Of a DNA stretch of 64,000 bases, positions 258-16,232 are shown in pieces. The DNA lies in assembly GCA_020137815.1 (NCBI GenBank), contig CM035357.1, positions 62,001 to 126,000 on the forward strand, in the 5' to 3' direction. The stretch is from Hormiphora californensis (lineage: Eukaryota > Animalia > Ctenophora). How positions within the stretch are numbered: the stretch's first letter is position 1; every line of letters begins with the position of its first letter. The notes under the pieces were generated by a model. That model saw nothing but the letters and a program-made list of their open reading frames with translations, was not told where the DNA came from and made no database searches. The position numbers and the translations under genes were made by a program.

Positions 258-693
258 CTAACTATTAGCAACTATTTCACACTCATACTTGGAGGGTGCA
301 GTAGAGGGCCTCTCTGGTTTTCTCTTTGTTTGTGCGTTCAGTTCTCGTTGAGAGAAGTGCAGGTACTTGGTGAGAGTAGGATCAGGAGGGAGGGGGGCTG
401 AAACATGTGTTAAATTGTGAAATACTGTGTGATGTACTAGACACCAAATCACTTGACATGTTTCCAATCTGTGAGCTCTCACACCGGGCAGAAGGCCTTG
501 TGTGGGCTCACACAAGTCCGAAAGACAGCCTACGTAGCATGACAACAAATCCCTAGTGGTCTGTCAGTGTCATCCTCTCTTACTTGAGACTGATAGTCGA
601 TTTGGTAGCTCCATGTGGAGTCCACACCTCCCACATTTAGGAACAGCTCCCCAGAGGGCAGAGGTTGGCCGAGATCTCAAACTCTCTGCCATA
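258..693 (-). CDS. Probable 5' exons of an unknown gene running off the left edge
   Basis: tttcag acceptor shortly before ATG GCA GAG (MAESLRSRP...KCGRCGLH); exon-like open segments inside ORF 258..548. Phases could not be reconciled. Confidence 0.35.
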
Positions 694-1519
694 TTAGCAA
701 TACTGAAAGGAAGGGTATTGTTTTCATTGTTCCCACGGCCCTTGTCAGCGCTATGTGGATATCATCATGGTTGCGATGTTTTGCTGCGCGCTACATTACT
801 GCGCGCAATGCTCTACATGCCTGTTCTCGCGTGTTACAAATCATACTGCTTTAGGGCACATTTTCTAGGTTCATTTTAAAATTGAAAGTTCTATATCATA
901 GCACTGGCAAGTGCCCCGGGCTCAAAAGGGGGGTGTGGGGGCACAGCCCCCACCATAAACGGGGGTGTGGGGGCAGAGCCCCCACCTTAGAAATACCCTC
1001 TAACTCAAAAAACAAAAGAGAGAGCACACGCAACACTTCTACACACAAGCGCGTGAAAACCTGCCAGTGCTACTATATACCATTGCAGATTTCGGGGGTT
1101 TTGATGCTTTAAAAAAGCATGTTCCAGATGAAGTAGGGAGCTGAAATTTTGTACTCTGAGTGCCCTCATATAGGAGAAGAGGCATGCAAATTTTCAGAAC
1201 GATCGGATGTAAGGTAAAAATTTGCCAGAGGGGTCCCAAAATGCAAAAATGTAAAGGAGGGGAGGGGGAGGGGGAGGGGGAGGGGGGGAGGACGCTTTTT
1301 TATCTTTGAGTGTTCTCCTAAACCACAAATAGTAGAGACTTGCCGTTTGGAACAGTGGTTCCTTACATCATTGCGCTCGGTAATAGCTGTGTGAGAACTT
1401 CGAAATCGCCATAGTTCATTAATTATTCATTAATTAGTCATTAAATATTCATTTTAACCATGGTTGCGATATGACACGACTCGAAGGTCATAAAGACTTG
1501 AAACCGGTCTTAGACGACG

Positions 1520-2095
1520 CGGAAAGATCGATTTATGGGGGGTCTTACTCGGGACAAAAATCTCTATCTCGCACCGTTAAGCCGTTATTTGCATATTTAT
1601 GCACCTATTCACGATTTTATGCATATTTTCAATATTTTCACTTCAGCTGGTCCTAGAACGTTTTCATGGACATATTTCGACGTAAAATAGTCGATTTATG
1701 GGGGGTCGTCCCCCGGACAAAAAGTCGTATCTCGCACCGTTTAGCCGTTATTTGCATATTTATGCACCGATTCATGATTTTATGCATATTCTAAATATTT
1801 CCAGTTCGGCTGGTCTTAGAACGTTTTCATGGACATATTTCGACGCAAAATAATCGATTTATGGGGGGTCTTACTCGGGACAAAAATCTCTATCTCGCAC
1901 CGTTAAGCCGTTAGTTGCATATTTATGCACCGATTCATGATTTAATGCATATTCTTAATATGTCCACTTCGGCTGGTCCTAGAACGTTTTCATGGACATA
2001 TTCCGGCGCAAAATAGTCGATTTATGGGGGGGTCGTCCCCCTAACAAAAAGTCGTATCTCTCACCGTTTAGTCGTTATTCGTATATTTATGAATT
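1520..2095. repeat. ~163-bp tandem repeat (about 3.5 units, alternating A/B variants), probably internal to a non-autonomous DNA element
   Basis: tcgatttatggggggtc recurs at ~1528, 1690, 1854 and 2017, followed alternately by ttactcgggac or gtcccccc. Confidence 0.8.
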
Positions 2096-2164
2096 ATTCA
2101 AATTCGAAAATATGCAGAAACCAGAAAAAAATAGCTTTTTCTATTTTACACCAAAAAGAACAGA

Positions 2165-2390
2165 AATTAAGTCCAAAAACCAATTAAATAAATTAGTTTG
2201 GATGCCCGGGCCCATGTGGTGTCACGGGGGTAACACCTTTAGGCTACTGTCATAAATGATGGATATCGGGAGAGACAAAGGAAATTAGGATAGAAAGAGT
2301 GCGATATAATCAAGAAAGACGAAGAGATAAATAAGAGGAGAGAGAAAAAAAGAGAGGTATAGTGAAAGAAACAGTGAGAGAGAAAGAGAG

Positions 2391-2460
<70 letters not shown>

Positions 2461-2637
2461 GTGTGCGAGAGAGAGACTGAGAGAGATAGATAGAGATAGA
2501 GAGATTGAAGGATAACAATTAACAATTAACGAGATATGCCGTTAATTATGGCAGTAGCCTAAAGGTGTTACCCCCCGTGACACCACATGGGCCCGGGCAT
2601 CCAAACTAATTTATTTAATTGGTTTTTGGACTTAATT
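2165..2637. repeat. ~91-bp inverted repeat pair bracketing a (GA)n microsatellite
   Basis: 2165-2255 is the near-perfect reverse complement of 2546-2637; (GA)n lies at ~2340-2505. Confidence 0.85.
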
Positions 2638-2977
2638 CTTTAATTATTCTTGTGATGTTACACTCCTTTTCATCTTACTTTCACTCTTGAGTCCTGCTAA
2701 TGCTAGGGCAGCTCTAATTGGACCATCAAGCATCAATATTTAGGAAACTAAAAGCTGCTGGCAATGCAACTTGTAGCAACAGTGCTGCAGATTTGCATGT
2801 CATGAATCATCACTCATCAAGTGAGTTATTTAAATTTATTTACTCGGTGATTACTCAGTGATTACTCGGTGATAAATTATTACATAATCCAGCGATGTAG
2901 TCATTTTATGATGCTGCTGTATTGACGTGATGTCTTGCAGAATTGTGTGCTTGAAGAAGGAGTGCGAGATCGAGAGG

Positions 2978-3070
<93 letters not shown>

Positions 3071-3240
3071 GAGAAGGGGACGAGGAGATGCCTGGCGATA
3101 AAAAGGGAGGGGAGAAGGGGGGGGAGTGGAAAGATTGGAATTTAAAGCCCCCCCCTTTTGGGGGGCCCCCCGGAAGTTTCGGGGGCCGCCGGGGGGGTTT
3201 TTTTCCCCCCTCGGGTTTGTTTAAAAGGGGGGAAGAGAGA

Positions 3241-3280
<40 letters not shown>

Positions 3281-3978
3281 ATGGTGTGTGTTTATTGTCA
3301 CCGCATGCAAGCTGTGCTTGACACACGATCGTGCATTCAAAGTTACAGTTCTGGACACACAAATAAACACAGTGTGCTATCGTTAGTAGCAATTTAAGGG
3401 GCCAACCATGTGCATTAAAACATTTAATGAAAAAATCTTGGCTACAAAGTTAATTGGGCGGAATTTTATTAAATTTGAATACATCTAAATATTATTCTAT
3501 ATTTAAATCATCTCATTCCCTAACCTATTGTAAAGCAGCCATCAATTAACATCTTCTAATAACCTACTGTTGGTTAAAGAAGGTGGGTCCCTCGATTTGG
3601 TCCAGTTGGTCGGGGGAGTTGGGTAGTTCAGTGGGTAGAGAGTTCCCGTATCCGTCCAACAAAACCTCGCCTGGAAACAATGATAGAATCAATGAAGGAG
3701 AGAAGTAGTAGGGAGAAGGCCGAAGGGAGAAGGGGGAATGAAGTGATGTGCCTGGAGACAATGATAGAATCAATGAAGGAGAGAAGTGGTAGGGAGAAGG
3801 GGGAATGAAGTGATATTATGATTCTTCTACTCCAAGTGCCTGGCAAATCCATACTATGCACAGAAAGCGGTATGATCGGCACTGGGTATGACACCCCCCT
3901 AGGCCCTACCACCAAGTACTACCATCAGGCAGGTTCGTCTGAACCAACTAAAGGTGTGCTTCCCTCAAGGGTTATAAG

Positions 3979-6900
3979 TTAAGTCCGGTATATCTTCCTA
4001 TTGACTTCATGAGCTAGATGACAATACAGCTGTAGTAATGAACGCTATAGTATTATCTGATTAGACTAAGGTGTGGACTGTGGTGATATGCATGTTGCAA
4101 TTTGTAACAGACACAAACAGAAACACATGCAAACAGACAGACAAACAGACAAACAGACAAACACACAGTAGACACAAAAACAGACTCACGCACAAACACA
4201 AACCGACTATATTATGCCACTGTGCAACATACCGAAAGCCACGTTTTTGATTCTTGCTACCAGTTTCGTCATACAGTGAGCCCGGTGATCAAAGGCGAAC
4301 ACACAAGAACTCTGGAGCTCTTTCTCAAACCAGTCAACTAATAACACCTATAAAGGAGGGGGTGTTAGGCGAATACACAGGAACTCTGGAGCTCTTTCTC
4401 AAACCAGTCAACTAATAACACCTATTAGGAGGGGGTGTTAGGCGAATACACAGGAACTCTGGAGCTCTTTCTCAAACCAGTCAACTAATAACACCTGTAA
4501 TTAGGAGGGGGTGTTAGGCGAATACACAGGAACTCTGGAGCTCTTTCTCGAACCAGTCAACTAATAACACCTATTAGGAGGGGGTGTTAGGCGAATACAC
4601 AGGAACTCTGGAGCTCTTTCTCAAACCAGTCAACTAATAACACCTATTAGGAGGGGGTGTTAGGCGAATACACAGGAACTCTGGAGCTCTTTCTCAAACC
4701 AGTCAACTAATAACACCTATAATTAGGAGGGGGTGTTATTAGGAGGGGGTGTTAGGAGCTGTAATGGGGGGGTGGCGGCCAACATCGGCCTGAATATAAA
4801 TAGGCGTAGACACTTAACAATGATAAAAACTGTAATAAATTAAATATAAAATGAGTCTATTGCCCCACTTGATATAGCTGCTCGTCCCTGTTGCCCTCGC
4901 CCCTCAATCTACCCCGATGCCCCCTGATGGAAACAGTTATTGATCGCACCATGGCGAAAGATAGCCTGAGTCGAAGATAACGGATGCATTGATCGTAGGT
5001 GTATCCCGTTTTCTTAGCTTTCTTATCGGCTAGCTGTTTCAGTGTCTTTTTGAATTCCCGACCGAGACCCCCCGTCGTGGACATTACCAGAGGTGTAAAT
5101 GAAGATTTTTCCACTTCAATGACCCGATGAAGGTAGCCAGTCTTTTTCTCCCTCTCATGTTTTTCATACACTTTAGAGACTGCCTGGTTAGAGTTGGATG
5201 CCACCCTAGGATTAAATACCCTCACATCAAAATAGGTGTTATCCATGCTAGACCAGAAATCACGTGTACTGATATCTAGGCGAGCTCCATCCGCCGTAAT
5301 AGTTCCCTCTGGGAGACTCATTCCTCGTACATTTAGCAGATGGGGTTCAACTTTCGTGTCATGACACACATTACTGAACTCACTTGCAATGAAGTCTCTC
5401 ACGTTGTTGTGGCGAAAGCATACAAAACCGCCGATCTTACATGAGATTGAGTGATCGATACTATTTTCCTCTCCACACACGCAGTTGGTAGGCAGTGCTT
5501 CTCCTGTCAGCGGCAGGTTGTATCGTGCAGACAGAGCATCATGCCACTCTTGTCTGTTCAGGGTAAAGTTTAATGCTTGGAGGGGAAGACAAGTAAGCCA
5601 AGAAGATGCACCTTTCTCAGACAGGAGATCAAGGTTCCTGCTTTCGGTGCTAGTCATTTTGCTTCGAATCTCCTCAATTTTCTGATGATGAATGTCATTT
5701 TTGGTACGGCGAATGATTGATGATTTCTCAGTTTGTTGGTTTTTGTCAACCTGAAATGTTTCGTGTTGGCCAAGAACCGCTGCAGACAAGTCTTCTGTGA
5801 TGAACTTAGAAAAGCTGTACTCCGAATCCGCTGATAGTTCTGGGTTATCAATTCCCAGTCCTCCAAATCTAACAGGGAGGGATGCGACTGATCTCAAGGT
5901 GTCGCTGATAACATGTTGGCCAGTTAGTACAGGGAGAAGTTTTTGGTGGATGGTTTTCTCGATGACTCCAAGTTGTTGGGATATTCCTGGAGTTGTTCTC
6001 ATGAGGTAGCTCCACCTTTTCGAGATCCCGATGGTGTATGCACTATAGGCTAGCTGTGGTTCGTTTACTGCAATTTCACAGAGTTGACTGATTTCCTCGT
6101 TCCATTTTGCAACCTCGTTCTGAACAAATTCCCTCTGGCTCTCCTCTGTTCCGATGTATGATCCTAGGTAGCGTTGGCCGTCTGTGGTGATGTTAGGAGC
6201 TGTAATTGGGGGATAATTAGAGTGAAATCTGGTGATAGGGCAACAGATCAATAATTATAACATAGTTCACAGTGTCATTATAGCTGCCTCTCTCCATTAT
6301 AGTTATCATGATATACCTGTTTCAAAGGAACACTCTGCTTCCCTGACTTGATCCTATCAATAGATTTGTTAACTCCCCTGTTTTCGTCTCTCTGCAGCAG
6401 TGTGTGTAATTTGATACCATGCATTCAGTTACCAAGGTAACGACACACTAGAAAATATCCCAATATCCCATAGAGTTTAGTTTCTATAGTTACCCAACAT
6501 AAAACAAAACTGCTGATATTATTTCCATATCCAGCAGCTCCAACAGGTCAATATTACATATGTAGACCCTAGCTGTTATGATAAACCTACATTAGAGAGA
6601 TAGGTAGGTCCTACCAGCTACCTATCTCTCTCTCTCTAATGTAGGAGGAAACGTACCCACTACCCCTCTTGGTTTGGTACTATCATCTACTTACCCCTCT
6701 TGGTTTGGTGCTGTCATCCACAAAGAGAACGGGAGAGGTATCAGCTATATCAGCCAGTGCAGTCACTGGTCTTGATAGAGTGATGGGGATGGTATCACCG
6801 ATAATTGATTCTGGCAGATCAGTTCCTTCAGGTTCTCTAACTAACACCACAGGAACATGGCTTCCTATTGCTGTCCTCAACTAGAGAGAGAGAGAGAGAG

Positions 6901-9900
6901 AGGGAGGGTGGAGGGTGGAGGGGGTGGAGGGGGAGGGGAGGGGTGGTGGGAAGGGGGAGGTAGGGGTGGTGGGAAGGGGGTGGAGGGGGTGGAGGGGAGG
7001 GGAGGGGGGAGGGAGGGTGGTGGGGTGGGGAGGGTTCCTTCAGGTTCTCTTACTAACACCACAGGAACATGGCTTCCTATTGCCGTCCTCAACTAGTCGA
7101 GAGAGGGTAGGGTGGAGGGGAGGGTGGATGGAGGGGTGGAGGAGGGAGGGGGTGGAGGGTGGTGGGAAGGGGGTGGAGGGGAGGGAGGGTTCCTTCAGGT
7201 TCCCTTACTAACACCACAGGAACATGGCTTCCTATTGCCGTCCTCAACTAGAGGGGGAGGGTGGAGGGGAGGGTGGAGGGAGATGGGTGGAGGGGAGGGA
7301 GAGGGGGAGGGGGTGTGGAGGGGAGGGTTCCTTCAGGTTCTCTTACTAACACCACAGGCACATGGCTTCCTATTGCCGTCCTCAACTAGTCGAGAGAATG
7401 AGGGGGAGGGAGGGGGAGGGGTGGTGGGGAGGGTGGTGGGTAGGGGAGGGTTCCTTCAGGTTCCCTTACTAACACCACAGGAACATGGCTTCCTATTGCT
7501 GTCCTCAACTAGAGAGAGGGGAGGGTGGAGGGGGTGGAGGGGAGGGAGAGGGGTGGAGGGGTTGGGGGAGGGTGGAGGGGAGGGAGGGAGGGGAGGGTGG
7601 AGGGGAGGGAGGGTGGAGGGGAGGGGGAGGGGAGGGAGGGGTGGTGGGAAGGGGGAGGGTGGTGGGGAGGGGGAGGGTGGAGTGGAGGGGAGGGTGGAGT
7701 GGAGGGGGTGGAGCAGGGAGGGGGTGGAGGGGTTGGGGGAGGGTGGAGGGGAGGGGAGGGTTCCTTCAGGTTCTCTAACTAACACCACAGGCACGTGACT
7801 TCCTATTGCCGTCCTCAGCTAGGTAGAGAGAGGGTAGGTAGAGGGAGGGGGAGGGGAGGGGGTGGAGGGGAGGGGGAGGGAGGGTGTAGGGTGTGGAGGG
7901 GAGGGTTCTTTCAGGTTCTCTTACTAACACCACAGGAACATGGCTTCCTATTGCCGTCCTCAACTAGAGAGAGGGTAGGGTGGAGGGGAGGGTGGAGGGA
8001 AGGGGGGGGTGGAGGGGGAGGGAGGGGAGGGAGAGGGGTGGAGGGGAGGGGGATGGAGGGTGGTGGGGAGGGGAGGGTGGTGGGGAGGGTTCCTTCAGGT
8101 TCACGTACTAACACCACAGGCACGTGAGGGGGAGGGTGGAGGGGAGGCTTGGGAGAGAGTGAGGGTAGGGAGAGGGAGGGGAGCCTAGGAGAAAGAGATG
8201 GGACTAAATTGGGGAGAAAGAGAGATGGAGGAGAGTTTACTATTATTCAACATGGTACCTGATGTAGGCAGAAGGGGTCGTTGAGAGAAGTTTCAGACAC
8301 CACAAACACCATAACTGTGCAGCTGCTGACCAATCCTTCCTCAGAGGAGAAACCTGAAGGTAAACCAACTGATGTAATTTATTACCATTCTAATCCGGTT
8401 TAGCAATTTGCCCATAATTCCACCTAGTTCTACGTCCTATTAAATTTCTGGTAACCATGACTGTTGTGTTGTTCAAACCCTTTTTTGGTGAGACAGGGTC
8501 GACCAAAGTAACTGTACCTGGATGGCGTGGTAAGGGAGGATCGGTTTGAACTCTAAAGTGTTGTGCCAGTTCTCTCGCTATAAAATCTGTGTTTGTCCAC
8601 TGAGTCTCACATATCTCACCAGACACATAAATATCTATCTTCTCTGAAATGAAGAGGCTAATATGAGTCAAATGAATTATCTAATGAGATAAATAAATTA
8701 TCTAGTAAGATAAATAAATTATCTAGTAAGATAAATGAATTATCTAGTGAGTTAAATGAATTAACAAGGTCTTATTCACACCATACATGTTAGTGTTTGT
8801 TTTACAGCTCTCACGACCTCTCAATTGTAACAAAAGAATAGCGCTTTAGTCCATTGTATGGTCGTGAGGTGAGAGTTAAGTCCATTGTGTGGCGCCATAA
8901 ATAAATTAACAATGTCAGAGCATTGGTCCCACAGAACAATATAGTGAAGGAAAACAAAAAGGGACTGCTCCAAAGGGTCTACACTTTACAGCTCCCACCC
9001 CCACTAATTGTTTTGAGTTTTCTCATTGGTTTTGTTCCCTTCGGTCCTGAAATGAAGACTTTCTTCCTACTCGCGTGAGTTCTAGACGCAAACCTTTCAA
9101 AAACAAGTTTCCACATTAGACACACCTAGTAGCTACGATTACAACTGACCTGTAACCAGAAACCACTAACTAACCAGTAACCACTTCTTCATGTCTTCAG
9201 TTGTGTGATAATTAACCACCTCGACACCTCTTTTAGTTGTGTCATTACAACTAACCATCTTTTTATTTTCAGTTGTGTGTTACAACTAACCATCTATCCA
9301 TCTATTCAGTTGTGTGATTGGCCTGGTGCATTGTCAGGGTGAGACACCCTGTGGAGACACCCACGAACAGGAAACATGTGAGGTAATAACATCAACATCA
9401 TGATCCCGTTTAGAACCAGCTTAATAACTTTATGACTTCCTGTTTTTATAAATTCAAGCAACCTAAAATACCTAAAGTGTCTCCCATGTTACCCCCTCTT
9501 ATTATCCTCCAGTACCTGCAAGCTACATATGATCTCTGTTCGCCTGGTTCCCTGCTATACTCTGACATGGTCAGTGGATGCAGGCTGACTTGTGGGAGGT
9601 GTGGCGATGGAACTGATGAGAAAGAGGGTGAGGAGAGTGATAACAACACGGATGATAACAAACAGGTAACACGGTGTAACCATAGCAACACAGTAACCAC
9701 TTCAGTTACCATGTCAACTAGTCACAACTTCAGTTACCATGCCACCATGGCAACTAGTAACAACTTAAGTAACCATAGCAACACTGTTTCAGAATGATGA
9801 CTCTACCTGTGAAGACATGTTATCCAGTGCGGACCACCCAGACGCTAGTGCTAACTGCAAACAATTCAGCCACCTTTGTAACCAAAGGAACGAGTTTGGA

Positions 9901-11348
9901 GAGCGAGTTACTGCCCAGTGCCCCGTCACTTGTGGAACTTGTGGATTCAACGACGACACTGGTTAGTTACCATAGTTACCATAGTAACCACTGTAACTGG
10001 TTAGTTTCCTGCATGCTTTTGCTTTTCAACACAAGTTGTTTTTATAATGAACTCAACTGATACACGTCTAGTTATTTAAATTCAACCCGTTTCAGTTTGT
10101 GAAGACATCTTGTCGAATGCGAAGAACCCTAACGCGACACTGAACTGTGAGACCTTCTCCAGCTACTGTGAGGGAGACGGCAACATTGCGGGTCGAGTTC
10201 AGGCTGAGTGCCCCAAAACATGCGGATTCTGCAGTTAATTAGTTAATTAATTAATTAATTAGTTAATTAATAAGTTAATTACCTGGTGTTAGTAGGGAGT
10301 AAGTAGAGCGTTCTCTCCGAGCATGGGGAGACTCCAGAATTCTAGAAACTGCTTTCTCTTGCTCAGTATTTACCCTGTTCTGAAGTTGTGAAAGTGTTAA
10401 TGATATACTGTTAACTACTGTTAATTACTGTCAGTTACTGTTAATGATACACTGTGAAGAAGTTGTTTTACTTGGTACTACCTCGCTACCAGGCTGCAAA
10501 GTTAATCAATTGGTAATGTAACATGGTATAAAGCCAATGTAAACTACCTGGTAGTGGTCAGTGAGGAACAAGTTCAGATACTTCAGTTCTTCATCACTTG
10601 TATTGTTGTGTTACCTGGTAGTGGTCAGTGAGGAACAAGTTCAGATACTTCAGTTCCTCATCCTGAATCAAGTTGGGAAACTGCTCCAGCAGGCTAACAA
10701 ACTTCCTCAATACAGTGTCATGTCTGCCCATCCACTTTAGAGCCCCATCATATGTGTGGGGTAGTTCAGCCTGGTTGGCAGTGTACCGAGGTGATCGTGT
10801 GAGACTTGCTGAGCCGCAGCGAGATGGAAACTTAAAGTGAGAGTGGACCGAATCAGAATTGGACAAGTTTGTTGTAGGTAGTAGAGATTAGCTTTCTGAG
10901 CATTTTGCATTTTTGCCGCTCAAAATCGACCCACCCATCACTGAGATATTTTTGTTATGTTGGGAGAACTCCTGTTTAATCAGTATGTATAAAACAGAAT
11001 AGAAACATTCATGGCGTTTTACTAACACATTCTGAATATAAGCAGTGAGGTTGACATGACCATGCACAGACGCAGGGCAATGCAAGCCAGCATATCAAAA
11101 ATTTAAAGAATGTGTTAGTAAAACACAAGGATTGTTTCTATCCTGTTTGATAAATACTGATCCAGCAGGAATTCTCCCAACATAACAAAAATATCTCAGT
11201 GATGGGTGGGTCGATTTTGAGCGGCAAAAACGCAAAATACTCAGAAAGCTAATCTCTACTACCTACTACAAAATTGTCAAATTCTGATTCGGTCCACTCT
11301 CACTTTAACGACAGGACCTCCATTTCGAATGTTGTCCAACTGTGTCAT
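3979..11348 (-). CDS. TIR-domain protein (TIR_2/SARM-like), ~329 aa, 9 coding exons
   Basis: Exons 11348-11304, 10830-10615, 10379-10283, 8643-8518, 8353-8259, 6880-6695, 6391-6317, 4347-4233, 4013-3979; all GT-AG and phase-consistent (990 nt). TIR pattern: KIDIYVS...EEGLVSSCTVMVFVVSETSLNDPFCLHQLRTAIGSHVPVVLVR...CMTKLVARIK. The last exon is the least certain. Confidence 0.8.
4294..4755 (-). repeat. 73-bp tandem repeat made of the 3' splice site plus the first ~55 nt of the exon starting at 4347
   Basis: Five extra copies of cctcctaatag|gtgttattagttgactggtttgagaaagagctccagag lie upstream of the true exon. Confidence 0.9.
4766..6190 (-). mobile_element. 5'-truncated non-LTR retrotransposon, restriction-like endonuclease type (CRE-clade-like)
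   Basis: ORF 4857..6251 has the RT-end motif RYLGSYIG, a CCHC knuckle (CVCG...DHSISC), RHN, and RLE motifs (ARLDI...YFDVRVFNP...EREKK..Y, FTPLVMSTTGGLG). TSD tgttaggagctgtaat at 4750-4765 and 6191-6206. Confidence 0.9.
6822..8127 (-). repeat. Array of acceptor plus exon-start copies (exon 6880) separated by variable G-run spacers
   Basis: The ~60-nt unit ttccttcaggttct...gtcctcaactag recurs at ~7035, 7190, 7328, 7451, 7761, 7907 and 8089 (partial) besides the true copy. Confidence 0.9.
9052..10238 (+). CDS. Secreted protein with three ShKT domains, nested antisense in the TIR gene intron
   Basis: Five phase-consistent exons (9052-9074, 9310-9381, ~9513-9665, 9793-9961, ~10097-10238). Signal peptide MKTFFLLACVIGLVHCQG; three C-x-D...C...C...C-x2-TC-x2-C units (CRLTCGRC, CPVTCGTC, CPKTCGFC). 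Confidence 0.9.
10836..11304. mobile_element. Palindromic MITE with TTAA TSD and AG...CT termini (Kolobok-like); putative Introner
   Basis: TTAA at 10832-10835 and 11305-11308; termini agtgagagtggaccgaatcagaat / attctgattcggtccactctcact; the arms pair over almost the whole 469 bp. Confidence 0.9.
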
Positions 11349-11397
11349 GGTATCAGCTGTTATTGTGAGATAGCAAGTTAGTTTTTGAGTGTGTTAA

Positions 11398-12065
11398 AGT
11401 AAGAGTGGCGCGCCGTGTTTTCTCACAAAACTTAGTGGATGAACGGGGAGTACCACCAGGACCATTGGTACGGTATCGAAAATTTCCAATTCTGTCTCGT
11501 TCATTAGTTATGACGTAATATGTTCATTATTTCAACTTTCATAAAATTGCTTTACAGAAAAATCTGTGCATTTTGGATTGAAATGGATGCTTGCATCGTG
11601 TTCAGCGTCAAAAAATAGCCGGGGTACCAAATTTTGGTGTCTCTACCTTGTCTGGGACGCGAGATATCGACAATTATCAAAAACGACCAAAATGGGAGAA
11701 AGAGAGTTTGTTATCTTTGGGTGCTAGTTGTTTGTGCGCGCCACCCACTTGTAACAAACTCTCTCTCTCACTTTGGTCGTTTTTGATATTTGTCGATATC
11801 TCGCGTCACAGACAAGGTAGAGACACCAAAATTTGGTACCCCGGCTATTTTTTGACGCTGAACACGATGCAAGCATCCATTTCAATCCAAAATGCACAGA
11901 TTTTTCTGTAAAGCAATTTTATGAAAGTTGAAATAATGAACATATTACGTCATAACTAACGAACGCGACAGAATTGGAAGTTTTCGATACCTTACCAATG
12001 GTCTTGGTGGTACTCGCCGTTCATCCACTAAGTTTTGTGAGAAAACACGGTGTGCCACTCTTACT
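11398..12065. mobile_element. Second palindromic Kolobok-like MITE (TTAA TSD)
   Basis: TTAA at 11394-11397 and 12066-12069; termini agtaagagtggc / gccactcttact; ~320-bp near-perfect arms. Confidence 0.9.
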
Positions 12066-13121
12066 TTAAAAGTGTCGCGTATTAGTTAGCTTTAGCAGCA
12101 GTTTAGGCGGGTTACAAGTGACAAAGTTTCAAATTGAACGTTAGAATCTAAACTCCTTGAATGTCAGGTTAGGGCAAATTTAGGGTTAGTGAATAGTGCA
12201 ATGTTAGGGTTATGGTTAGGGCTCGGGATTACCTATCATGTAACTTTTATTAAGCCGGTTTAACGGTTGAGTGGTTTGGTTTTTAGAGCCATTTTAGCCA
12301 TCTAGTGCAGGGTACATCTACGTCCCATGCGGGTCCAGGGCCGAGCAATCGAGCATGGACTGGGGAGCCCCAGCAGGGGAAGGGGGCGGGGCCCCATAAT
12401 GGGGACCAGGTGAAGCCCCGTGAGCAGGGCCTAGGGGAGACGGCCCCCGAAAATTTTCAGCGGAATTGGCCTTCTTTGAACTGTCTGAGTGCGTTCCGAG
12501 TACTGAAAGAATGGCTTCATCGATTTGACAAACGCCGCTGGCCCCCGATAGCAGCGCTGGATAAGGCAGCGCTTTTCAACGCTTTTCAATTCATCGATTT
12601 TCAATTTTACAAATTAAATGCAAATTCTGTGAAATCTGAACTTTTTTCAAATAGCGCGCGCTGATCTTTCTCCGCTGCAGAAAGTGTAAGGCGCGAATTA
12701 AGGTCCGGACCCGATGAGGCCAAGCTCTGTCGCGCGTTTTCAAAATTAAAAAACTTTCAAAATAAAAATAAAAAAACTTCAATCGCGTGTTCCTCTCGGA
12801 AACAATAAAATCTGGGTGCCTTTCATTGCTAACATTTCGTAGTTTTTGCGCGCGCGACGGGTTAGGGCTATCCGTTAGGGTCTGGTTAGGGTTTGGTTTG
12901 GGGTTATCGGTTAGGGCTAACGATTCTCTAACAGATACCGTTTAGTTTACTCAAATCGGCCATGTGGTTGCGTGGCTATAGCCGCTTGAAAAAAGTCGGT
13001 CTGAGTGTACTCTTTTGGTAGCGCGCACCTGTAAGGCTGCAAGGCACCCAGATTATAATCGCACCCTGTTCCTCTCACTTTAAGTTTCGAGATGAGGGGC
13101 CTCGGAAATGTTTGAAAAGCG

Positions 13122-15506: not shown

Positions 15507-16139
15507 TTACTTTTTGTCTTTTTTATCATTATTAAGGAGCATAGCGACACCTCCTACTACAGCTACTGCCCCTAAAACTGGGGCAGCAACAGTCCCCAGA
15601 AAGGTGGTAGCCCCGAGACTTTGAAATGTGGCAAACCAAGACCCAGCCGCTACATTCCCGATCATTGACTGAACCGTAGCTGCAGCAGATCCGGCCACAA
15701 CTCCGCTCGAGGTGAATCCAGCCATATACGGAGCAGCCACCGCCACTCCTCCAGCAATGGCTGTCTTTCCGACAGCTTTTCCCACATTGCGGTCCTCTTT
15801 AGAAGGCCCGCTTCTTTGTCTTGTAAGGTTGTAGTTCTTGTAATTCTCATAATTCTCGTTCTTTTTAGAGGGATCTGTTTTCTTCTGGTAAAACCTTTCA
15901 TTGCTCCCAAACACCTTAGGTACAAACTTCAAGGGACACCCTTCCAGTCTTTGCCTCTTCTTGACTTGTTTTATCGCCTCGAGAGCTCTCAAATGTTCGG
16001 ATTCCGGGAATTCAAGGTGGGTAAAACCAGGGTAGTTTCTCACGCGTTCTTTGAGAGCTTCCAGCGTTAGCTCCCTGTCCCCTGACTCCACCAAGAAATT
16101 CAACAAGGTAGTCAGTGTGATGTAATCTGGACTTGACAT
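15507..16139 (-). CDS. IFI6/IFI27 (ISG12)-like protein with N-terminal extension
   Basis: C-terminal GFTSSGVVAGSAAATVQSMIGNVAAGSWFATFQSLGA is the ISG12 motif; the ATG at 16139 directly follows a pyrimidine tract and tgtag acceptor. Confidence 0.85.
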   Translation of the reverse strand: MSSPDYITLTTLLNFLVESGDRELTLEALKERVRNYPGFTHLEFPESEHLRALEAIKQVKKRQRLEGCPLKFVPKVFGSNERFYQKKTDPSKKNENYENYKNYNLTRQRSGPSKEDRNVGKAVGKTAIAGGVAVAAPYMAGFTSSGVVAGSAAATVQSMIGNVAAGSWFATFQSLGATTFLGTVAAPVLGAVAVVGGVAMLLNNDKKDKK

Positions 16140-16232
16140 TTCTACAAGGATCAAAGAGTAAGGAAAAAGTTGGGTTTGTTAAATTGGTAGCGGTAACAAG
16201 AATTATTTGCATTATGTATCCATAATGCTACG

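Follow-up and report, generated by a model that had tools for sequence, protein, structure and literature searches.

A young, polymorphic TTAA-type MITE in the first coding exon of a conserved ctenophore gene: a candidate nascent intron

Exonic insertions of Ds and dSpm in maize, and of Tc1 in C. elegans, are commonly removed from transcripts by splicing near the element ends, with partial or full rescue, and this splicing is usually imprecise, leaving small in-frame or out-of-frame scars. The gain of introns from transposons is well documented in protists. Among the closest described systems are introners, in which the 5' splice site is part of the element and the target-site duplication provides the 3' AG (PMC11282704). 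A 2022 survey gives Introners for only two animal groups, its text naming copepods and not ctenophores (10.1101/2022.06.06.494994), and a literature search on introners and ctenophores found no relevant paper. The present analysis concerns a 64,000-nt stretch of the genome of the ctenophore Hormiphora californensis (the window; assembly GCA_020137815.1, contig CM035357.1, here C8:62001-126000), in which a 469-bp miniature inverted-repeat transposable element (MITE) interrupts the first coding exon of a gene. The interpretation favoured, with slightly more confidence than doubt, is a very recent and polymorphic insertion of a TTAA-type MITE into a conserved ctenophore gene, at codon 15/16, and a plausible, although unproven, nascent intron. 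On this view it is neither an established intron nor the product of a specialised intron-generating family. The locus raises the question of whether one step is enough to turn a generic MITE into an intron.

The element and its target site are placed as follows, in window coordinates.
10836-11304, no strand: palindromic non-autonomous DNA transposon (MITE), 469 bp, with termini AGTGAGAGTGG...CCACTCTCACT
10832-10835, no strand: left (plus-strand) copy of the TTAA target-site duplication, by direct reading
11305-11308, no strand: right (plus-strand) copy of the TTAA target-site duplication, by direct reading
10832-11033, no strand: left arm of the palindrome, pairing with 11107-11308 (inverted-repeat finder, RNA fold)
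11107-11308, no strand: right arm of the palindrome (inverted-repeat finder, RNA fold)

The TTAA duplication is perfect. According to the inverted-repeat finder the arms are 202 nt each, 92% complementary and spaced by 73 nt, and the 28-mer TTAAAGTGAGAGTGGACCGAATCAGAAT matches both ends of the element with zero mismatches and has no other occurrence in the window; by chance, none would be expected. With terminal inverted repeats, a short length, a target-site duplication and 469 bp that hold short open reading frames (ORFs) only, it has the features of a MITE. Folded as RNA, it forms a near-perfect stem of ~215 bp at -333.5 kcal/mol, compared with a mean of -120 for shuffled sequences (z = -36). 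On the minus strand, the interruption reads ...GGT CCT GTC GTT AAA|GTGAGAGTGGACCGAATCAGAAT ... ATTCTGATTCGGTCCACTCTCACTTTAAG|TTT CCA TCT...

The gene that carries the insertion lies on the minus strand, and the parts of it that matter most here are these.
261-11348, minus strand: host gene, at least 11 exons, from tblastn of Mnemiopsis P0002 and Bolinopsis P0006 (residue 1 to ~448)
11304-11348, minus strand: exon 1a, ATG plus 15 codons, MTQLDNIRNGGPVVK, its N-terminus conserved in P0002 and P0006
10615-10830, minus strand: exon 1b, 72 codons, FPSRCGSASL...TDHYQ, with a genuine donor GTAACA at 10614
10283-10379, minus strand: exon 2, NRVNTEQEKAVSRILESPHARR..., with acceptor cttcag and donor GTAATT

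The ATG (11348-11346) plus 15 codons runs to AAA, with GTGAGA directly after; exon 1a shares its last base (11304) with the MITE, which starts there on this strand. After tttaag, the minus-strand frame resumes as FPSRCGS... and continues to the GTAACA donor at 10614. By tblastn on the window, the exons are colinear with the Mnemiopsis and Bolinopsis proteins along the minus strand from ~261 to 11348, and the MITE is the sole break in frame. Exon 1b, used as a query, matched one database protein, P0001, of 104 aa and 97% identical, beginning MTQLDNIRNGGPVVKFPSRCGS. With P0001 in turn as the query against 1.84 billion representatives, a protein of 519 aa was found whose alignment begins at residue 1. 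This relative is a hypothetical protein of Mnemiopsis leidyi, and the Bolinopsis microptera orthologue is 80% identical. Both proteins have the uninterrupted N-terminus MTQLDNIRSSRP(V/M)VRFPSRCGSA, so that the start codon at 11348 and the 15 codons leading up to the MITE are no chance ORF but coding sequence shared among ctenophores, and the element sits between codons 15 and 16. No paralogue of exon 1b was found in the genome besides the locus itself.

These results bear out the preliminary description of this DNA in two respects: the MITE does interrupt the first coding exon of a gene, and the orthologous Mnemiopsis and Bolinopsis proteins are colinear across the MITE site. Its naming of the host as a TIR gene is not borne out. 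The TIR_2 domain PF13676 had no match in the window and scored below threshold, in Bolinopsis P0006 only (E 0.13; 13 bits, where the cut-off is 28), and no TIR appeared among PDB sequence matches. An AF2 model, with a pLDDT of 33, was too poor for a fold search.

Two further observations concern the N-terminal exon. At 10545-10660, some 50 bp that take in the last part of exon 1b together with its GTA donor are duplicated ~16 nt apart (DEELKYLNLFLTDHYQ|gta twice), giving two candidate donors, of which the second can be reached only through a stop. In addition, P0005, a 97-aa database ORF of another relative, starts at MVRFPTRCGSASL, near the MITE position, and runs on through an AT-rich insert of 41 residues placed elsewhere than the MITE; its start and insert suggest lineage-specific introns in the N-terminal exon.

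The empty site is absent from the window. Logan contigs of four runs were compared with positions 8300-12500. In one of them, X5, which has the same organism label and comes from another sample and study, a single contig joins 10831 to 11305. The joint omits 473 bases (4 letters are ambiguous; the omitted part starts TT and ends CT), and on the minus strand it reads GTCGTTAAGTTT, with a single TTAA and the codon AAG. The preliminary description had reconstructed an empty site reading GTT AAG TTT, and the X5 contig supplies exactly that, including the AAG; the empty-allele junction sequence is GTCGTTAAGTTTCC. The joint is not what splicing of the filled allele would produce, namely 10830 joined to 11304 with the codon AAA. 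Depth in X5 is very uneven and often higher over exons, and the run may be RNA rather than DNA; in either case the contig shows an allele without the MITE. The differences from X5 listed in exon 1b are all synonymous (5/5; chance among possible transitions ~0.007), which supports purifying selection on this exon. At the four listed exon 1b sites of single-nucleotide polymorphism (SNP) between 10710 and 10768, X5 has non-reference letters only; the SNPs of exon 1b that can be used for phasing are at 10660, 10710/10711 and 10765/10768.

A second source agrees. P0001 is metagenome-derived, seen on 4 ENA contigs none of which exceeds 805 bp, and crosses the MITE site uninterrupted (MTQLDNIRNGGPVVKFPS; start MTQLDNIRNGGPVVKFPSR). 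After ...TDHYQ it continues for 17 residues, VKLNEFSYQAEQLIRRN, unlike exon 2, and this tail was not found in the window or the genome. Most likely, the tail is a read-through of a diverged intron 1, and its source unspliced DNA without the MITE. The empty allele in X5 together with the P0001 read-through indicates that the insertion is young and polymorphic. Presence/absence polymorphism with a colinear coding sequence, as expected of Introners, is thus seen at this locus.

Whether the filled allele can be rescued depends on the element ends, where the following signals can be read.
11298-11303, minus strand: candidate 5' splice site GTGAGA, MITE bases 2-7, with AAA| on the exon side
10852-10856, minus strand: putative branch-point-like motif CTGAT, whose A precedes the candidate AG's G by 22 nt
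10831-10848, minus strand: candidate 3' splice region ggtccactctcactttaag, formed by the pyrimidine tract of the terminal repeat, the AG coming from the duplication plus the host G

Positions +1 to +5 of the candidate donor AAA|GTGAGA are G, T, R, A and G. The CTGAT motif is followed by ccactctcacttt before the candidate AG, which consists of the minus-strand last A of the TTAA at 10832-10835 and the host G at 10831. Excision of 11303-10831 would remove 473 nt, equal to the 469-bp element plus the 4-bp duplication, and would keep the frame with the sole change of AAG to AAA (both Lys); the predicted spliced junction joins 11304 to 10830, GTCGTTAAA|TTTCCATCT. At the level of sequence, therefore, one splice site comes from the element and the other from the duplication and its flank, as in Introners. 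Under the favoured interpretation, the first terminal repeat in a filled-allele transcript would give a usable U1-type donor, while the other repeat, the TTAA copy and the host G would contribute the pyrimidine tract and an AAG acceptor, which is weak. This would follow the logic of introners, with the 5' site from the element and the 3' AG co-opted from the duplication, and some filled-allele transcripts would lose 11303-10831 and encode a protein identical to that of the empty allele. On these signals, the chances that 11303-10831 is correctly spliced out of some or a substantial fraction of filled-allele transcripts appear evenly balanced.

Several features weigh against splicing of this kind. 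In the nine genuine introns of the host gene, as inferred from protein alignment, the acceptor is always YAG (9/9; 7 CAG, 2 TAG) and the donor always GTA (9/9), whereas the candidate has an AAG acceptor and a GTG donor. The donor, pyrimidine tract and TTAA are mutually paired in the ~215-bp hairpin, which, if it forms, could block U1 and U2AF; alternatively, the hairpin could bring the splice sites together, as has been proposed for the hairpin introns of Amoebophrya and euglenids (PMC7789003, PMC11282704). A CAG 22 nt into exon 1b is a possible competing acceptor and would shift the frame. The runs examined for RNA speak neither for nor against splicing, no spliced reads being found: the metatranscriptome X20 contained other MITE copies only (90-99% likeness), and X22, a run guessed to be RNA, contained nothing. 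The protein database held no transcript-derived Hormiphora proteins for the host gene, and exact and codon-degenerate scans of JGI metagenomes for the uninterrupted junction gave 0 matches. The preliminary description had called the element perfectly spliceable. Its arithmetic holds, as removal from GT (11303) to AG (10831) restores the frame, but with an AAG acceptor, a GTG donor and a hairpin the wording was overstated.

The same features raise a real possibility that the filled allele is a loss-of-function or hypomorphic one, in which the MITE stays in the mRNA, a stop coming shortly behind VRVDRIRI, or in which splicing goes wrong, the frame-shifting CAG being one possible target. Such an allele would persist by being young and sheltered by the intact allele in a highly heterozygous population, and the SNP heterozygosity of H. 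californensis is reported to be about 2% (PMC8527503). The polymorphism is in keeping with this (the empty-site contig and the non-reference letters of X5, and the P0001 read-through), and so is the window copy of the MITE, with just 2 private differences in an alignment of 30 copies, as are the suboptimal AAG and the sequestering of the splice sites in a hairpin of -333.5 kcal/mol. Such a loss is harder to reconcile with a donor whose bases +1 to +5 pair with U1, together with a suitably spaced pyrimidine tract and branch-like CTGAT, or with the common splicing of exonic Tc1 and Ds/dSpm near their ends. The remainder of the gene is intact on the filled haplotype, which also speaks for a functional allele, although a young null would look alike.

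The element belongs to a large and homogeneous family. A DNA search of the genome (110,691,255 bases, 45 contigs) found at least 40 full-length copies at 95-100% identity, these being the 40 that were scored of 440 first-look candidates. The exact terminus CCACTCTYACTTTAA occurs 685 times genome-wide, against 1 for a control pattern, which corresponds to roughly 340 elements. All of the other copies read (30/30) have TTAA at both sides, and their flanks are mutually unrelated. After orientation and alignment, 30 copies show a mean pairwise identity of 96.8%, with the outermost 13-15 bases invariant. Many homogeneous copies at unrelated loci are what would be expected of a MITE. A second family, of 668 bp and with 311-nt arms, shares the terminus AGTRAGAGTGG with the first, and one of its members is the close neighbour of the host gene.
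11398-12065, no strand: sister MITE, 668 bp, arms of 311 nt and 96% complementary, termini AGTAAGAGTGG, TTAA at 11394-97 and 12066-69

This sister MITE ends 46 nt upstream of the host-gene ATG, so that with its duplications (11394-12069) the native 5' untranslated region (UTR) and promoter of the gene are also disrupted. On the host-gene strand it has C after TTAA, and the splice rule of the 469-bp MITE is not applicable to it. Its position bears on another possible fate of the filled allele, namely that it has acquired a new 5' end, either because the acceptor at the MITE end is used in spliced-leader trans-splicing or because the transcript begins within or beyond the MITE, with translation from the downstream ATG at Met34 of exon 1b yielding an N-terminally truncated protein. 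Leaders added by trans-splicing are reported to be frequent in H. californensis mRNAs (PMC8527503), and the second MITE has already upset the native promoter and 5' UTR. Against this, the truncated product would be without the most conserved N-terminal motif, FPSRCGSASL; a new 5' end is judged very improbable.

A TTAA target together with an RR (AG) terminus is the signature of Kolobok transposons (PMC6004289), and the element shows this arrangement (TTAA|AGTGAGAGTGG). Xenopus Kolobok elements and T2-MITEs are alike in their TTAA duplication, AG (RR) terminus, non-autonomous nature, high copy number and recent activity, and one Xenopus Kolobok terminal repeat starts AGTGAT, similar to the AG start of this MITE (PMC6004289). 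Unlike in Xenopus, no partner transposase with these terminal repeats was found here, and TTAA is also used by piggyBac. Longer elements with the MITE termini (1.4-2.4 kb) contained no transposase ORF, no search with a Kolobok transposase profile having been made. The piggyBac-type loci of the genome lacked the MITE repeat motif, and for the one with an intact frame it was absent up to 1.5 kb either side. The earlier designation as a Kolobok-like palindromic MITE can be kept as far as the palindrome, the TTAA, the AG end and the family go, while the autonomous Kolobok with the same terminal repeats, which it suggested looking for, was not found; judged from target site and AG terminus, "Kolobok-like" is a reasonable label, and not a proven one.

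The intact piggyBac-type frame is an observation in its own right. It lies within C4:6129054-6133028 (L033), encodes a transposase of 517 codons (PF13843, E 1.6e-67), and is flanked by inverted repeats, at least 255 nt long and distinct from those of the MITE. About 20 degraded relatives of this frame occur elsewhere in the genome.

The preliminary description went further and regarded the MITEs as an intron-generating, Introner-like family. In such a family, TTAAG insertions would be spliced precisely and efficiently in either orientation, this copy would be a functional new intron, and selection would keep exonic copies with G after TTAA. The sequence logic of the splice sites is correct, the mechanism fits the introner model of Micromonas (reviewed in PMC11282704), and Introners are over-represented in marine organisms according to the 2022 survey (10.1101/2022.06.06.494994). 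There is also a suggestive case at C1:9678588-9681603 (L049), where a sister-family copy (element C1:9680089-9680770) lies exactly in the TTAA of the AAG acceptor of a Sushi exon. The exon encodes a phase 1-1 Sushi domain (Pfam Sushi, E 7e-9) and its inferred native acceptor is ...cattccaTTAAG|CA. The 3' splice region is now ccactcttactttaag, that is, the MITE terminus with its pyrimidine tract and branch region, in the same configuration as at the host gene. Indirectly, this favours the acceptor half of the splicing model, as a MITE terminus seems to serve, or at least to be tolerated, as a 3' splice region.

The distribution of the copies points the other way. Thirty unselected copies were excised in silico, and the longest stop-free frame across each site was compared with frames at random positions in the same loci. 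Control frames had a median of 74 codons and a 90th percentile of 143, and most excised sites gave 33-131 codons; the spanning frames were no longer than the controls, and the longest of them look non-coding when translated. A convincing coding exon was found for one copy in 30, namely that of the host gene, a rough proportion, since exonic status was judged by ORF length, eye and Pfam, without annotation. The low proportion favours the interpretation preferred here, its roughness being a point against it. When copies were instead selected for TTAAG, none of the 22 with both ends found lay mid-exon, and two adjoin exons, L049 and another (L048) that lies ~45 nt upstream of the likely acceptor of a B9-domain exon. 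By this rough test, then, the copies are not mainly introns in coding genes, as those of Introners should be.

The G after TTAA tells a similar story. It follows 158 of 685 termini (23.1%), against 10.5% of 1,907 background TTAA sites in ~190 kb (P ~3e-21), and 17/60 termini in the 30-copy sample; in the same ~190 kb of genome, TTAAG/CTTAA is about half as common as TTAAC/GTTAA. The expected bias is therefore present, and family-wide, but it is not tied to exons as had been supposed. Half of the sampled elements (15) have a TTAAG-type end, and 14 of these 15 are outside recognisable coding exons. With half of the elements G-ended and yet just one exonic, selection for exon rescue cannot yield the TTAAG excess, and a target preference of the transposase is probably the simpler reading. 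Among TTAAG copies, the spanning ORF was longer on the sense than the antisense strand in 12 of ~19 by manual count, which speaks for neither reading. Together with the weak acceptor, the strong hairpin and the lack of any spliced read among the run contigs examined, these results make a generator in which selection keeps the G unlikely, and a true ctenophore Introner family scarcely less so. In the interpretation preferred here, that of a recent insertion and plausible nascent intron, the family would insert genome-wide like an ordinary MITE and the host-gene copy would be an accidental, rescuable exonic hit, the family-wide preference for TTAAG raising the odds of such rescuable accidents.

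Other features of the host gene and its surroundings can be recorded. On the plus strand at 9432-10238, antisense inside host intron 2, ORFs with ShK-toxin-like cysteine patterns (CPxTCGxC) resemble, by eye, a nested intronic gene, and such genes have been reported as common in H. californensis (PMC8527503). In intronic tandem arrays at 6880-8100 and 4293-4738, the next exon's 5' part recurs along with its upstream sequence: one type has six extra copies of LRTAIGSHVPVVLVREPEGT (the start of exon 5), with periods of about 123-155 and G-rich spacers, and the other several extra copies of VLLVDWFEKELQSSCVFA (the start of exon 7), for which TRF gave a period of 73 and 6 units. A minus-strand ORF of 464 codons at 4857-6251, in a host intron, looks by eye like the C-terminal part of a retroelement polyprotein, and had no Pfam match. 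Beyond the gene, a minus-strand ORF at 15510-16154 encodes a domain of the Ifi-6-16 (interferon-induced 6-16) family (E 8.5e-9).

It is doubtful that ctenophores have an active Kolobok-like MITE family whose palindromic ends make any TTAAG insertion, on either strand, a precise and frame-neutral GT-AG intron, with this locus a nascent polymorphic example. If they do, transposon-driven intron gain would extend to a further animal lineage, and the TTAAG preference would bias the family toward spliceable insertions. If the element is unspliced, this is an ordinary insertional mutation, and donor-like terminal repeats and duplication-derived AGs arise by chance. With a segregating insertion, both alleles at hand and deep RNA-seq and Iso-Seq for the sequenced individual, the locus would be a clean natural experiment. 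The roughly two-fold TTAAG excess is a separate, small finding, which bears on how often exonic accidents are rescuable.

The nearest parallels are the introners of Micromonas pusilla and Aureococcus (PMC11282704; 10.1101/2022.06.06.494994), which are likewise short non-autonomous elements with terminal inverted repeats and a target-site duplication. There, as proposed here, the 5' GT comes from the element and the AG from the duplicated target, and removal restores the frame; presence or absence varies among individuals, and the host is marine. Those introners are many near-identical, spliced introns in genes, whereas here one in 30 sampled copies is exonic and splicing is predicted. The element also differs in being a near-perfect 469-bp palindrome, and in an AG that needs an extra host G and would arise at TTAAG sites only. 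The MITE introns of Fritillaria borealis and the hairpin introners of Amoebophrya (PMC11282704, PMC7789003) are again transposon-derived and marine, and Fritillaria is an animal. In both, paired terminal repeats bring the intron ends together and the duplications lie at the exon-intron borders. Their splicing is genome-wide and RNA-supported, compared with a single locus known from sequence alone, and their introns are mostly non-canonical (AG-AC, AG-AT or variable), as opposed to the canonical GT-AG proposed here. Compared with the exonic Ds/dSpm and Tc1 insertions, the geometry of the Hormiphora element would give an exact and synonymous restoration of the interrupted reading frame.

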